A stretch of 64,000 nucleotides of DNA from Mytilus californianus (GCF_021869535.1 NW_026262659.1:8432001-8496000); one strand, 5' to 3'; counted from the first letter of the stretch, positions 567-62,619 are shown. Program-made: numbers and translations. Notes: a model not told the origin generated them from the sequence alone.

Positions 567-762
567 GGTTAGTAAAACCTCATTTGGTAGAAGGACAGCA
601 TGACCAAGAAACAAGAATTAATATCAAAGAGGGAATATCTTACAAAGTGGCTGATTGTGAAATGGTAGGAACACCAGAACCAAGCTTTCGATGGTTTAAA
701 GACAATACATTAATAGAATATACAAATACTTTCGGAATATACTTCACAAATGATCATAGGAG
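567..762 (+). CDS. Gene 1 exon A, Ig domain N-half (LVKPHL...[20 protein letters not shown]...DHR)
   Basis: tattag|gg acceptor, ag|gtttgt donor. Ig Cys and W-x-K motif. Matches gene 2 exon 61778-61976. Confidence 0.93.
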
Positions 763-61000: not shown

Positions 61001-62619
61001 AACTGAGTAAAACGTTGCAAATGTGCGGTTAATTGACAGACTTGATAACAGATGAATTATCAATTAAATTTCAAATAGAACAAGTGCTTCCATAGAATCC
61101 AAAAAATTATTGAAAGTTTATGTAGAAGATGTATTTTCATACACTTACATATTTATTCCTCTACAAAACAACTACAAGAAAATATGATTGTAAGCAAGTA
61201 TTCTTTATCCTTGATTTTGTCCTCTGTACAACGTATTTTATCATATTCTTACATACCCGGTACTGTAAATTCAGAAACTATTGCGTGCATTTATTATTGC
61301 GAATTTTGAAGAATGAACTAAAATGCGAGATTAATTATTGCGATTTCAGGAAAATCTGCATACAGTTGTATGTATCAGATATCAGAATGCAAGTTTTTAT
61401 TATTGCGATATTCATTCAGTCGCATTATTCGCATTAATAAAAACCTTGCAATAATTTCTAAATTTACAGTAATCAATACCGATGAAGATCTCATTATCGT
61501 GATGTATATACTGGATAGTCATGATAGTAGCATATATATAATATACATTACAACATTTCTATCTGGCAGCTGTTAACTTTTAAAGTACAAAATATTATTA
61601 TAGGACTTCCAAATAAACTAGGGGAGCATGTAAGCTAGCAGATTTATTTTAACAGCTAATTGTCATACAAATTCTGCGGCAAAATAAAAACAACTATTTT
61701 AGCACATAAGTGCCAGAATAAAACTAAAATAAAATGCATAAAGCTTTTAATGGTCCTAAAATGTAATCCATACAAACCTCTTATTGTTGTCTGTAAAGTA
61801 GATCCCTAAAGTATTGTTGTCATCATCTATTAACTTGTTGTCCTTAAACCATCGGTAGGTTGGTTCTGGTATCCCTACCATCTCACAATCAGCCACTTTG
61901 TAAGATATTCCCTCATTAATACTAATTCTCGTGTCTTGCTCATGTGATCCTCCGGCTAAATGTGGTTTTACGATCCCTGTTAAAGAATAATATAGAAATC
62001 GTTGGTTTTACTATTCCTATTTCTCCATAGCAAATGTCCACAAATAAGACAACTGGATCTATCCAACGTGTTTGAAATACAGAGGTCTGTTTTAAGAGCA
62101 GGTTTTTATGAAGATTGCAAATCTCCTCACTTTTATTAATTCACATCAGTGACTACTTAATACAAGTTTGACTGTATACTGTAAATTCAGAAATTTTTGT
62201 ATGCATTTGTTATTGCGATTTTTCAAGAATGGACAAAAATGTGAGTTTAATTATTGCAATTTCAAAAAATCTGTTTGCAGATTTTATCAGAATGCGAGTT
62301 CTTACTATTGCAATACTCACCCAGTCGCATTATTCGAATTAATAAAATCTTCACAATAATTTCTGAATTTACAGTATTGTACCCGATTTCTAATTCAAAA
62401 TTTTGAAAGATTTACTTTTAGTGTCCACCCAATTGTGTTTTAAATATAAATGCAAATTAATACAAGTATACAATACCTCTAACTGTAATCTTTTTTTCTG
62501 TTCTATCTGGTTCTATATGACTACTACTATTGGGTTTCATACCCAGACAAACATAGGAACCAGTATCTGATAGTTTGACTGAATGAATAACCAGCTTAAC
62601 TGTTAGGGAAAAAGCAGAT
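39464..62619 (-). CDS. Pvr: Gene 2: PDGF/VEGF receptor-like RTK paralog, 5'-partial. 14 exons, ~750 aa in window: part of penultimate Ig, last Ig, TM, split kinase, full tail ending ETLV
   Basis: Same exon boundaries and phases as gene 1. Motifs [55 protein letters not shown]. Symbol is family-level only. Confidence 0.95.
41896..42200. mobile_element. 160-bp palindrome followed by a tail with two CRE palindromes
   Basis: agattctaccac...ggatatttatccat / agtggataaatatc...gtggtggaatct. TGACGTCA at 42155 and 42186. Confidence 0.75.
43543..43648 (-). CDS. Gene 2 exon L ([35 protein letters not shown])
   Basis: 106 bp, GT-AG junctions. Confidence 0.95.
44603..44645 (-). ncRNA. Hammerhead-like core (CUGAUGA...GAAA...UC) with broken helix I
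   Basis: Minus strand CUGAUGA-AGGUAAAUCAA-GAAA-AGUAUU-UC. Sense to the gene 2 pre-mRNA. Confidence 0.35.
45022..45121 (-). CDS. Gene 2 exon K ([32 protein letters not shown])
   Basis: 100 bp, GT-AG junctions. Confidence 0.95.
45703..46382 (+). mobile_element. HINE-like element with a nested repeat (45858-46070)
   Basis: Two caaattcaaacttgatctgtg units, gacag microsatellite, terminal atgcccc...ggggcat hairpin followed by AAAA. Confidence 0.7.
47319..47359 (-). CDS. Gene 2 exon J ([13 protein letters not shown])
   Basis: 41 bp, GT-AG junctions. Confidence 0.95.
47975..48160 (-). mobile_element. HINE-like 3' fragment
   Basis: Hairpin followed by (ccgt)n on the plus strand. Confidence 0.55.
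48345..48415 (-). CDS. Gene 2 exon I ([24 protein letters not shown])
   Basis: 71 bp, GT-AG junctions. Confidence 0.96.
48916..49038 (-). CDS. Gene 2 exon H ([11 protein letters not shown])
   Basis: 123 bp, 38 of 41 aa identical to gene 1. Confidence 0.97.
49276..49556 (-). CDS. Gene 2 exon G, hinge plus kinase insert with three Tyr (DYVDP, PYYVNK)
   Basis: 281 bp, 60 bp longer than gene 1 exon G. Confidence 0.96.
49676..51017. mobile_element. Non-autonomous TIR element with arrays of TCGCCCCAC subterminal repeats
   Basis: gacaaatcgccccactggcaaatcgccccacacc (49688) is inverted relative to 50970-51010. About 10 motifs per arm. gttt(g) on both flanks. Confidence 0.8.
51530..51724 (+). mobile_element. 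Decayed tRNA-derived SINE with (AATC)n tail
   Basis: A-box-like ttggcaaagtggtccaag, degenerate B-box, tail aatcaatcaatcaatc. Confidence 0.55.
52138..52840 (+). mobile_element. HINE-like element with 160-bp array (~4 copies)
   Basis: tcaatagata at 52221, 52381, 52541, 52702. (gacg)n and terminal hairpin tacgtcccgtaaacgggcgta-taaaaa. Confidence 0.85.
52922..53041 (-). CDS. Gene 2 exon F ([39 protein letters not shown])
   Basis: 120 bp, GT-AG junctions. Confidence 0.96.
53490..53594 (-). CDS. Gene 2 exon E (LGQGAFGRV...VAVKMVK)
   Basis: 105 bp, GT-AG junctions. Confidence 0.96.
53661..55689 (+). mobile_element. HINE/Helentron-like element with 166-bp array (10 full copies plus a partial)
   Basis: aactagaggctc start. 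gccatcttg at 53818, 53991, 54157, 54322, 54488, 54654, 54819, 54985, 55151, 55317, 55483. (gacg)n and hairpin agctcacttggcccttcgggccaggtgagct at 55654-55684. Confidence 0.88.
55985..56259 (+). mobile_element. HINE-like 3' fragment, family of 45703-46382
   Basis: aagttagagtgc units and terminal tgcccc...ggggcataaaaa. Confidence 0.6.
56363..56492 (-). CDS. Gene 2 exon D, juxtamembrane ([10 protein letters not shown])
   Basis: 130 bp, 9 nt differences from gene 1 exon D. Confidence 0.96.
57301..57468. repeat. 43-bp minisatellite, ~4 copies, 13 bp from the gene 2 TM-exon donor
   Basis: tatcatgaagctatgtgtatttgtcattccctattcttacaca at 57301, 57344, 57387, 57430. Confidence 0.97.
57481..57614 (-). 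CDS. Gene 2 exon C, transmembrane ([27 protein letters not shown])
   Basis: 134 bp, tag|gt acceptor, ctg|gtgagt donor. Confidence 0.95.
58098..59571 (+). mobile_element. HINE-like element with ~161-bp array (~7 copies)
   Basis: 5' tacgaccgca matches the 3' hairpin tatacgacc...ggtcgtata. (gac)n. ccccaaa units at ~161 bp spacing. Confidence 0.87.
59790..59890 (-). CDS. Gene 2 exon B ([33 protein letters not shown])
   Basis: 101 bp, cag| acceptor, g|gtatgt donor. Confidence 0.93.
59994..60403. mobile_element. 410-bp non-autonomous DNA transposon with poly-G/poly-C TIRs and 8-bp TSD
   Basis: cacggggggggtctc ... gagac(C)24tcgtg. TSD tgtgatgg at 59986-59993 and 60404-60411. Confidence 0.88.
61261..61471. 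mobile_element. Tc1/mariner-type MITE
   Basis: tactgtaaattcagaaa ... aatttacagta. Confidence 0.82.
61778..61976 (-). CDS. Gene 2 exon A, Ig domain N-half
   Basis: 199 bp, IVKPHL...[20 protein letters not shown]. 44 of 64 aa identical to gene 1 exon A by hand count. Confidence 0.93.
62177..62376. mobile_element. Tc1/mariner-type MITE
   Basis: tactgtaaattcagaaa ... tctgaatttacagta. Confidence 0.82.
62477..62619 (-). CDS. Gene 2 Ig exon ([29 protein letters not shown]...KKITVR)
   Basis: tttcag|a acceptor, g|gtattg donor, 143 bp. D-x-G-x-Y-x-C motif. Phase fits the next exon. Not in the ORF track. Confidence 0.88.

Follow-up and report, generated by a model that had tools for sequence, protein, structure and literature searches.

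Vertebrate VEGFR1 (FLT1) and VEGFR2 (KDR) are paralogous class V receptor tyrosine kinases (RTKs), one of which signals more weakly and modulates the other, and the decoy role of VEGFR1 rests on its high ligand affinity, weak kinase activity and soluble isoform. Among invertebrates, Drosophila Pvr and other PVRs are described as receptors that precede the class III/V split and combine Ig domains with a split kinase (PMC10328876). In the oyster Crassostrea gigas, CgVEGFR is reported to bind CgVEGF, and a VEGF-VEGFR-MAPK pathway to drive the proliferation and migration of newborn haemocytes (PMC12468279). Here we compare these systems with two convergent VEGFR/PVR-like RTK genes in a 64,000-nucleotide stretch (the window) of scaffold JAKFGE010000017.1 of the mussel Mytilus californianus, which has a G+C content of 30-35% and contains no N. 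The gene on the plus strand is called G1 and the gene on the minus strand G2; both are already annotated, and RefSeq labels both "VEGFR1-like". The explanation that we favour, at a probability of about 0.6, is that G1 is a selectively maintained, docking-poor derived paralogue and G2 the conservative copy, the two having arisen from an inverted duplication in the lineage leading to Mytilus.

By its position in the tree described below, G2 is the Mytilus orthologue of the molluscan VEGFR/PVR-like receptors, which include CgVEGFR (PMC12468279) and the RefSeq "VEGFR1-like" proteins of scallops, oysters and abalone. It resembles them in its length class (1388 residues), in its Ig domains and split kinase, and in carrying the same insert and tail motifs. 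The other sampled bivalves each add a single lineage to the tree, whereas Mytilus has the derived G1 lineage in addition. Compared with the VEGFR1/VEGFR2 pair, the Mytilus duplication is independent and arose within mussels, and what sets G1 apart is that it has lost docking motifs but retained a strongly conserved kinase. More than one annotated PVR copy is also found elsewhere; among the search matches, the insects Eretmocerus hayati, Sitodiplosis mosellana and Anopheles darlingi had several each. Within the comparisons made, only the Mytilus locus has the conserved tail-to-tail arrangement. Lineage-specific PVR/VEGFR-like duplicates are common in invertebrates, and it is well supported that G1 and G2 represent asymmetric divergence after a local duplication rather than a new kind of system. 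New in this case are the age of the G1 losses, which are shared among species, and the purifying selection that still acts on the G1 kinase; searches of the literature yielded no publication about VEGFR paralogues in Mytilus. In Tegillarca granosa, two nearby models (KUTeg_023985, protein P0002, and KUTeg_023983, protein P0212) encode near-identical VEGFR-like proteins, which may be a local duplicate or a split model.

Inverted duplication is evident from the structure of the two genes. Translated comparison of the two window halves recovered 13 inverted exon pairs in collinear order, and a motif scan placed HRDLAARN at 13308 on the plus strand and 49032 on the minus strand, with G-loops at 8025 and 53583, respectively. 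The top-scoring junctions of GT-AG type that keep the frame gave equal intron phases in G1 and G2 (2,1,0,1,1,1,0,0,2,1,2,0; 12/12 introns), and all 12 introns stand at identical columns of the protein alignment. The spliced frame of G1 is open over 628 residues (exons 567-762 to 25355-25792) and that of G2 over 702 residues (exons 61976-61778 to 40063-39464). Residues 153-628 of G1 are 100% identical to the 476-residue RefSeq model XP_052089662.1, and the G2 model is 100% identical over its 702 residues to a 1388-residue RefSeq isoform. The stop codons lie at 25790-25792 (G1) and 39466-39464 (G2), leaving a gap of 13.7 kb. An earlier note on this DNA, made without database searches, had described two convergent genes with this spacing, 12 introns of shared position and phase, intact frames and 38 of 41 identical residues in the HRD-DFG exon, and all of this was reproduced; the 44 of 64 identical residues that it gave for the last Ig exon were recovered as 44 of 64 or 65, and the position at which it ended the pair, 62619, coincides with the first base of an additional G2 exon (62619-62477). 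Both genes extend past the window edges, and most of each ectodomain lies outside.

Relatives of the two genes were gathered by scanning with the insert exon of G2, without a profile, and then by word searches, and a tree of 42 sequences was built by maximum likelihood. A single clade (support 100/100) comprised all G1 and G2 sequences of Mytilus, and within it the G1 sequences formed a clade of their own (100/100). The stem of G1 measured 0.36 changes per site, compared to about 0.01 for the G2 branches. Scallops, oysters, the pearl oyster, unionids, venerids, gastropods and cephalopods were each represented by a single lineage. The synonymous divergence (dS) between the paralogues was 0.55, about twice that between M. 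californianus and M. galloprovincialis (0.28-0.32). Because of the tree and this comparison of dS, the duplication is considered specific to the Mytilus lineage and strongly asymmetric, where the lineage is delimited by the mytilids sampled, all of them Mytilus, and is not claimed to be the genus as such. A convergent arrangement is also found in M. galloprovincialis, where 9.3 kb of OZ263152.1 separate the G1-type gene XP_076071570.1 from a 1389-residue G2 orthologue, and this spacer is collinear with that of the window, showing that the tail-to-tail arrangement is conserved. The single Mytilus clade and the retention of the pair in this species both agree with the lineage-specific inverted duplication proposed previously. 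The G1 orthologue of M. coruscus has 90-93% protein identity and ends at the same stop. Inverted homology between the two genes continues for a short distance beyond the stops (25837-25913 with 39463-39386, and 27250-27366 with 38886-38758), and the introns have otherwise turned over.

Both genes read as class III/V RTKs (PDGFR/VEGFR, or PVR in invertebrates) by their split kinase, their catalytic motifs and the tree. Pfam assigned PK_Tyr_Ser-Thr to the kinase exons and Ig families to the first exon, and the PF07714 match covers a short stretch of the profile (positions 76-121/122) over exons of 73 and 93 residues, as is expected from an insertion in the kinase. The solved sequences nearest to the exon that bears this insert were VEGFR2 and VEGFR1, which aligned through it, followed by PDGFR, FLT3, KIT and FGFR. 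The catalytic motifs, including GxGxxG, VAVK, the alpha-C Glu and the activation-loop tyrosines, are all present in G1, G2 and the G1 orthologues, and with amphioxus, frog VEGFR3 and bee Pvr as the root, both genes nest in the molluscan VEGFR-like clade. A transmembrane helix is found in both. The full-length, 1388-residue product of G2 has a hydrophobic N-terminus, and the Pfam matches of its M. edulis orthologue (P0175, the G2 cluster representative) include the VEGFR N-terminal Ig-like family; a signal peptide, seven Ig domains and a single transmembrane helix are thus the predicted architecture of G2.

G1 and G2 are identical at 470 of 627 aligned residues (75%), and the differences are unevenly distributed. 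Non-synonymous divergence (dN) was 0.044-0.074 in the kinase lobes and far higher in the insert (0.19), the tail (0.23) and the last Ig domain, Ig7 (0.17), which agrees with the earlier description of divergence concentrated in the insert, tail and ectodomain. In an alignment of G1 and G2 with scallop, oyster and unionid receptors and a gastropod-like protein from Logan, G2 retained every motif common to these distant molluscs, from a DYx element through [IV]PK to a C-terminal PPxY. In the G2 insert, encoded with the hinge by the exon at 49556-49276 (minus strand), these are D-Y-x-D-P and P-Y-Y-V-N-K-A, seen as EDYVDP and TPYYVNK and contributing three tyrosines; its best matches in the PDB were VEGFR2 and VEGFR1. 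In the G2 tail, encoded in full ancestral form by the last exon (40063-39464), they comprise a stretch ending in [IV]-P-K and the PPxY near the C-terminus, seen as PPPTY. The corresponding hinge and insert exon of G1 (12769-12989, plus strand) is 20 residues shorter than that of G2, since 17+3 residues are gone, and P-Y-Y-V-N-K has become P-D-N-L-N-K. All three tyrosines are lost, leaving the G1 insert with none, and they are absent through the same deletions in the G1 relatives of M. galloprovincialis and M. coruscus.

The last exon of G1 (25355-25792), which encodes the C-terminal tail, carries a second set of losses. Alignment of its DNA to G2 revealed a 1-bp deletion directly before the codons for G-E-D-G-Y-L-I-P, which is a frameshift, with a 6-bp deletion adjoining it. 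A TGA (25790-25792) then arises within the old Y-L-I codons, and the old frame is still readable to the ancestral stop, as a fossil at 25793-25915 that can be aligned to the end of G2 and now forms the start of the 3' untranslated region. The frameshift removes the YLIP motif and the terminal PPxY, so that the motifs missing from G1 are, in all, YLIP, TDYRH, PPxY and the three tyrosines of the insert, each of them conserved across molluscs. Retained in G1 are the tyrosines of the juxtamembrane region and of the activation loop, along with two YxxM motifs in the tail (GYLKM and HYTKM). Because the missing motifs are conserved across molluscs, their absence reflects losses in G1 and not gains in G2. 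The frameshift is real and not an assembly slip, because DNA contigs from runs X1, X6 and X7 (two studies), which span 25419-25921, contain no indel between 25355 and 25800; the same tail ending is present in M. coruscus G1 and in G1b, a second M. californianus copy described below. Run X7 also contained two contig variants at 25517-25661.

By consensus, YxN binds the Grb2 SH2 domain, YxxM binds the PI3K p85 SH2 domain, PPxY binds WW-domain ligases of the Nedd4 family, and a YLIP/YIVLP-like site binds PLC-gamma, as at VEGFR2 Y1175. The earlier note had proposed rewired docking sites and a different adaptor set for G1, together with the lack of a ubiquitin-ligase handle. The motif losses bear out the first part of this proposal. 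The change in adaptors is a putative one, assigned from motif consensus only, and the ligase handle is likewise read from the PPxY motif only.

Selection differs between the two genes and between their parts. The ratio of dN to dS (omega) was estimated pairwise by the Nei-Gojobori method on codon alignments made exon by exon, and not by branch models. Between M. californianus and M. galloprovincialis, omega of G1 was 0.095 in the kinase (bootstrap 0.06-0.16; dS 0.39), 0.44 in Ig7, about 1.0 in the transmembrane and juxtamembrane part (few changes), 0.64 in the tail and 0.33 overall. Between M. californianus and M. coruscus, the corresponding values were 0.09, 0.62, about 1.0 (few changes), 0.46 and 0.26, so that the kinase of G1 was compared in two species, at dS 0.10 and 0.39. 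Omega of G2 between M. californianus and M. galloprovincialis was 0.044 in the kinase, 0.03 in Ig7, 0.15 in the transmembrane and juxtamembrane part, 0.13 in the tail and 0.075 overall. M. californianus, M. coruscus and M. galloprovincialis all have an open frame in each of the 13 G1 exons. In G1-type genes, the exons for Ig2-Ig6 are likewise open in three species, with no stops, and their omega of 0.41-0.43 corresponds to 112 non-synonymous and 65 synonymous differences, where about 210 non-synonymous differences would be expected at neutrality. As judged from these ratios, the G1 kinase is strongly constrained, its ectodomain relaxed and its distal tail close to free. The earlier note had held that a kinase ratio near 1 would refute its reading; the ratio observed is about 0.09, the catalytic core is intact and under purifying selection, and the G1 kinase is predicted to be active. 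Kinase ratios this low in both species comparisons, together with the open exons, make it unlikely that G1 is a pseudogene.

In the sequence of events that we favour, a single molluscan PVR/VEGFR-like receptor gene underwent an inverted duplication to give G1 and G2. G2 kept the ancestral receptor, with seven Ig domains, a split kinase and the full set of tyrosine and PPxY motifs, and presumably acts canonically through ligand-induced dimerisation, trans-phosphorylation and adaptor recruitment. G1 lost the three insert tyrosines and the distal tail, with its YLIP-type site and PPxY, before M. californianus, M. coruscus and M. galloprovincialis split, and the rate of change of its ectodomain and tail has since been several times that seen in G2. 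The product of G1 may therefore be an active kinase with a reduced docking repertoire and a narrower or differently regulated output. A Mytilus-specific second receptor of this kind would be a natural experiment on how RTK output is re-wired after duplication, because G1 keeps a conserved kinase yet has shed docking sites found throughout the family. In bivalves, the production and migration of haemocytes are under the control of the PVR/VEGFR pathway, according to work in the oyster (PMC12468279), and such a receptor would bear on mussel immunity and haemocyte disorders.

G1 has been multiplied further. A second copy, G1b (XP_052089799.1, 943 residues), lies 173 kb upstream on the same scaffold and strand (JAKFGE010000017.1:8234592-8295718, hereafter L004) and is collinear with window positions 2-34088. 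Its DNA is 98.5% identical (98.3-98.7%, introns included) up to window position 20115 and 85-95% identical after it, and its tail exon has a premature stop. G1b could be a haplotig that was left uncollapsed or, alternatively, the product of a recent segmental duplication. Another G1-type locus is likewise found in M. galloprovincialis (UYJE01000677.1:339370-394932, hereafter L007), with a stop in the tail exon in this assembly, and no Ig7 exons were found in it. It is adjoined by a TIR-domain gene and an open reading frame (ORF) resembling a retroelement, and there is no G2 within 10 kb downstream. Such G1-type copies away from G2 (L004 and L007) weaken the case for a dedicated two-gene unit. 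A Logan genomic contig (L006, SRR29152242) holds an intact version of the L007 tail, ending in KEKIDI as in window G1; it was considered as the G1-type gene of a more distant species and rejected as such, since it matches L007.

Several points weigh against the explanation of G1 as a maintained, docking-poor paralogue. Beyond the pairwise nature of the omega estimates and the consensus basis of the adaptor assignments, the orthology of window G1 with the M. galloprovincialis copy beside G2 is positional, and in a codon tree it is the second M. galloprovincialis copy (L007) that groups with the G1 of M. californianus and M. coruscus (99/99), in conflict with the positional assignment. The distal tail varies between G1-type copies, with the stops already mentioned in G1b and L007, and in the paired M. 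galloprovincialis copy it has a triplicated segment and a different frame. Evidence that G1 is transcribed was not found either. Among about 10 million reads sampled from RNA run X21 (6% of the run; tissue unknown), 0 fell on G1 exons 12-13, and word searches with the P0152 region, the G1 tail exon and P0176 found no Logan transcript-derived protein of G1 type spanning exon junctions; a transcript-derived protein was likewise not seen for G2, so this blank for G1 is weak. The 5' end of G1 is a further such point. Within the fetched flanks, neither a signal-peptide exon nor an intact first-Ig exon of G1 was found, and the models of G1-type genes disagree (476, 943, 864 with a separate 836, 1229 and 670 residues), none of them having the signal peptide and first Ig domain of G2. 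Because the 5' half is annotated inconsistently, a full ligand-binding G1 receptor is not claimed.

Downstream of that region, counterparts of the G2 exons from about residue 33 onward are present in the flanking DNA (the L002 and L004 sequences) and in the orthologous loci, where those for Ig2-Ig7 are open, with identity between G1-type genes and G2 of 74-81% over residues 87-370 and 46-52% over residues 360-584. A Kringle-domain gene stands directly upstream of G1-type copies in both M. californianus and M. galloprovincialis (L004:1-2961, L001:1-9722 and, as protein P0179, at L007). Some models join its exons to the G1 Ig exons (836 residues) or straight to the transmembrane and kinase part (670 residues), and either a chimeric 5' end or an artefact of annotation may lie behind such fusions. 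In a 3.6-kb stretch, RNA reads of X21 fell only on very high-copy repeats at 23660-23900 and 26060-26899, which have summed contig depths of 10^4-10^6, and the small word shares held by RNA runs could stem from such repeats rather than from G1. Two Logan matches, P0297 and P0298, were rejected as transcripts, being genomic contigs with an intron upstream.

A possible but somewhat doubtful alternative is that G1 became an independent, neofunctionalised receptor, with its own ligand and its own narrower output separate from G2. The open ectodomain exons with an omega of 0.41-0.43, as opposed to 0.03 for Ig7 of G2, are consistent with this alternative, as are the long G1 stem and the further multiplication of G1-type copies; the disagreement of models over the G1 N-terminus and the signal peptide that was not found in the fetched flanks count against it. 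Less likely is a paired-receptor system, put forward as a candidate in the earlier note, in which G1 would be co-expressed with G2, would tune it by ligand sharing or heterodimers and would escape PPxY-dependent turnover, in the manner of VEGFR1 and VEGFR2. The conservation of both the tail-to-tail arrangement and the spacer between M. californianus and M. galloprovincialis could be taken to favour it, as could the retention of the kinase in a gene that lost family-wide docking motifs and the identity of 74-79% to G2 in the Ig2-3 exons of G1-type copies (the exons for residues 360-584 of G2 being at 46-52%). However, adjacency is expected of any local duplicate and so is no sign of coupling, no G2 lies beside the G1-type copy at L007 or beside G1b as far as the fetched flanks reach, and exons 12-13 of G1 drew no reads in X21. 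An elaboration of the same idea, which appears equally unlikely, would have a VEGFR1/VEGFR2-like division of labour evolve independently in mussels, with G1, its kinase conserved, its docking sites few and its ectodomain fast-evolving, heterodimerising with G2 or competing with it for ligand to tune PVF signalling in haemocytes and with its 5' end perhaps chimeric from the upstream Kringle gene.

It is improbable that G1 is instead a decaying or dispensable duplicate, on its way to becoming a pseudogene or a presence/absence gene, with the kinase constraint as a residue of the past. The truncated and variable tail, the stops in G1b and L007, the truncated RefSeq models, the lack of X21 reads on exons 12-13 and the omega of 0.44-1.0 outside the kinase would all fit such decay. 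However, kinase omega stays near 0.09 in two independent species comparisons at different depths of dS, 13/13 exons are open in three species, and Ig2-Ig6 are not only open but clearly below the neutral expectation. A misassembly, with two haplotypes of a single locus placed as an inverted pair, can be dismissed as the source of the two genes: the near-identical G1b could be an uncollapsed haplotig, but G1 and G2 themselves are inverted, their dS is 0.55, their proteins are only 75% identical and their introns have turned over. An independent chromosome-level assembly of M. galloprovincialis contains the convergent pair as well, and a G1 clade and a G2 clade were each obtained across species, so the two genes were rejected as alleles or haplotigs of each other.

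The remaining exons of the two genes in the window were delimited by their splice junctions and translations, with support from Pfam and the motif scan. On the plus strand, the first G1 exon in the window encodes the first half of Ig7 (567-762, acceptor at 567 and donor at 762; Pfam I-set; 44/65 residues identical to G2), and the gene continues upstream of position 1. It is followed by the second half of Ig7 (2145-2245, by exon comparison), the transmembrane-helix exon (3467-3603), recognised by a hydrophobic stretch in the translation, and the juxtamembrane exon (3771-3900), which contains the Met where the 476-residue RefSeq model begins. The kinase N-lobe (8014-11155) is encoded by exons at 8014-8118, with the G-loop GQGNFG and VAVK, and 11036-11155, with alpha-C. 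After the hinge and insert exon come the HRD-DFG and activation-loop exon (13302-13424), exon 9 (14124-14194, encoding PVKWMAIES) and, ahead of the tail, the C-lobe exons at 17293-17333, 18860-18959 and 23533-23638. G2 enters the window on the minus strand with the exon for the second half of Ig6 (62619-62477), a 100% match to residues 638-686 of the G2 isoform P0292, and continues beyond 64000. Its Ig7 exons are at 61976-61778 and 59890-59790, its transmembrane exon at 57614-57481, its juxtamembrane exon at 56492-56363 and its N-lobe exons at 53594-53490 and 53041-52922. The HRD-DFG exon (49038-48916) and the C-lobe exons (48415-48345, 47359-47319, 45121-45022 and 43648-43543) complete the kinase.

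The rest of the spacer between the stops (25916-39463) is repeat-rich, with inverted homology only near each gene; no convincing ORF was found between the stops, and an Rfam search of the window gave no match. In the gene table that covers window positions 1-35792 (L002), the annotated minus-strand gene with the 1388-residue Ig and kinase product, which is G2, has more than 26 isoforms and a range spanning the whole 42-kb locus. The annotated range of G2 thus encloses G1, which is on the other strand; candidate causes are alternative exons far from the rest of G2 or the merging of its model with that of another G2 copy.

Among the repeats at this locus, one is built from G1 itself. A head-to-tail tandem array with a 46-bp period (14157-14659, about 11 copies) extends from exon 9 into intron 9, each unit consisting of the last 38 bases of exon 9 plus the GTAAGT donor. 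The array is present in all G1-type loci examined, in 9-16 copies (G1b, M. coruscus and the paired M. galloprovincialis copy; L004:37707-38119, L003:49678-51119 and L001:22822-23646), whereas G2 has a single copy of the unit in both species. By its sequence, each copy is a potential decoy 5' splice site, and splicing there would change the reading frame.

Other tandem arrays resembling satellites occur in the introns and the spacer, at 53835-55593, 58424-59468, 52139-52770, 4881-5508, 6622-7283, 9490-9792 and 32344-32872. Intron 4 of G2 contains a 166/497-bp array with 92-95% matches and a local G+C of 0.41, arrays with 160- and 161-bp periods are also found in G2 introns, and intron 4 of G1 contains 42/84-bp arrays. 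In addition, a segment of G1 intron 11 (22408-22656) is repeated in inverted orientation upstream of the G2 exon that starts at 62619 (63152-62862), with 76% identity over about 290 bp. This pair does not belong to the series of collinear exons, and it probably represents a mobile element.

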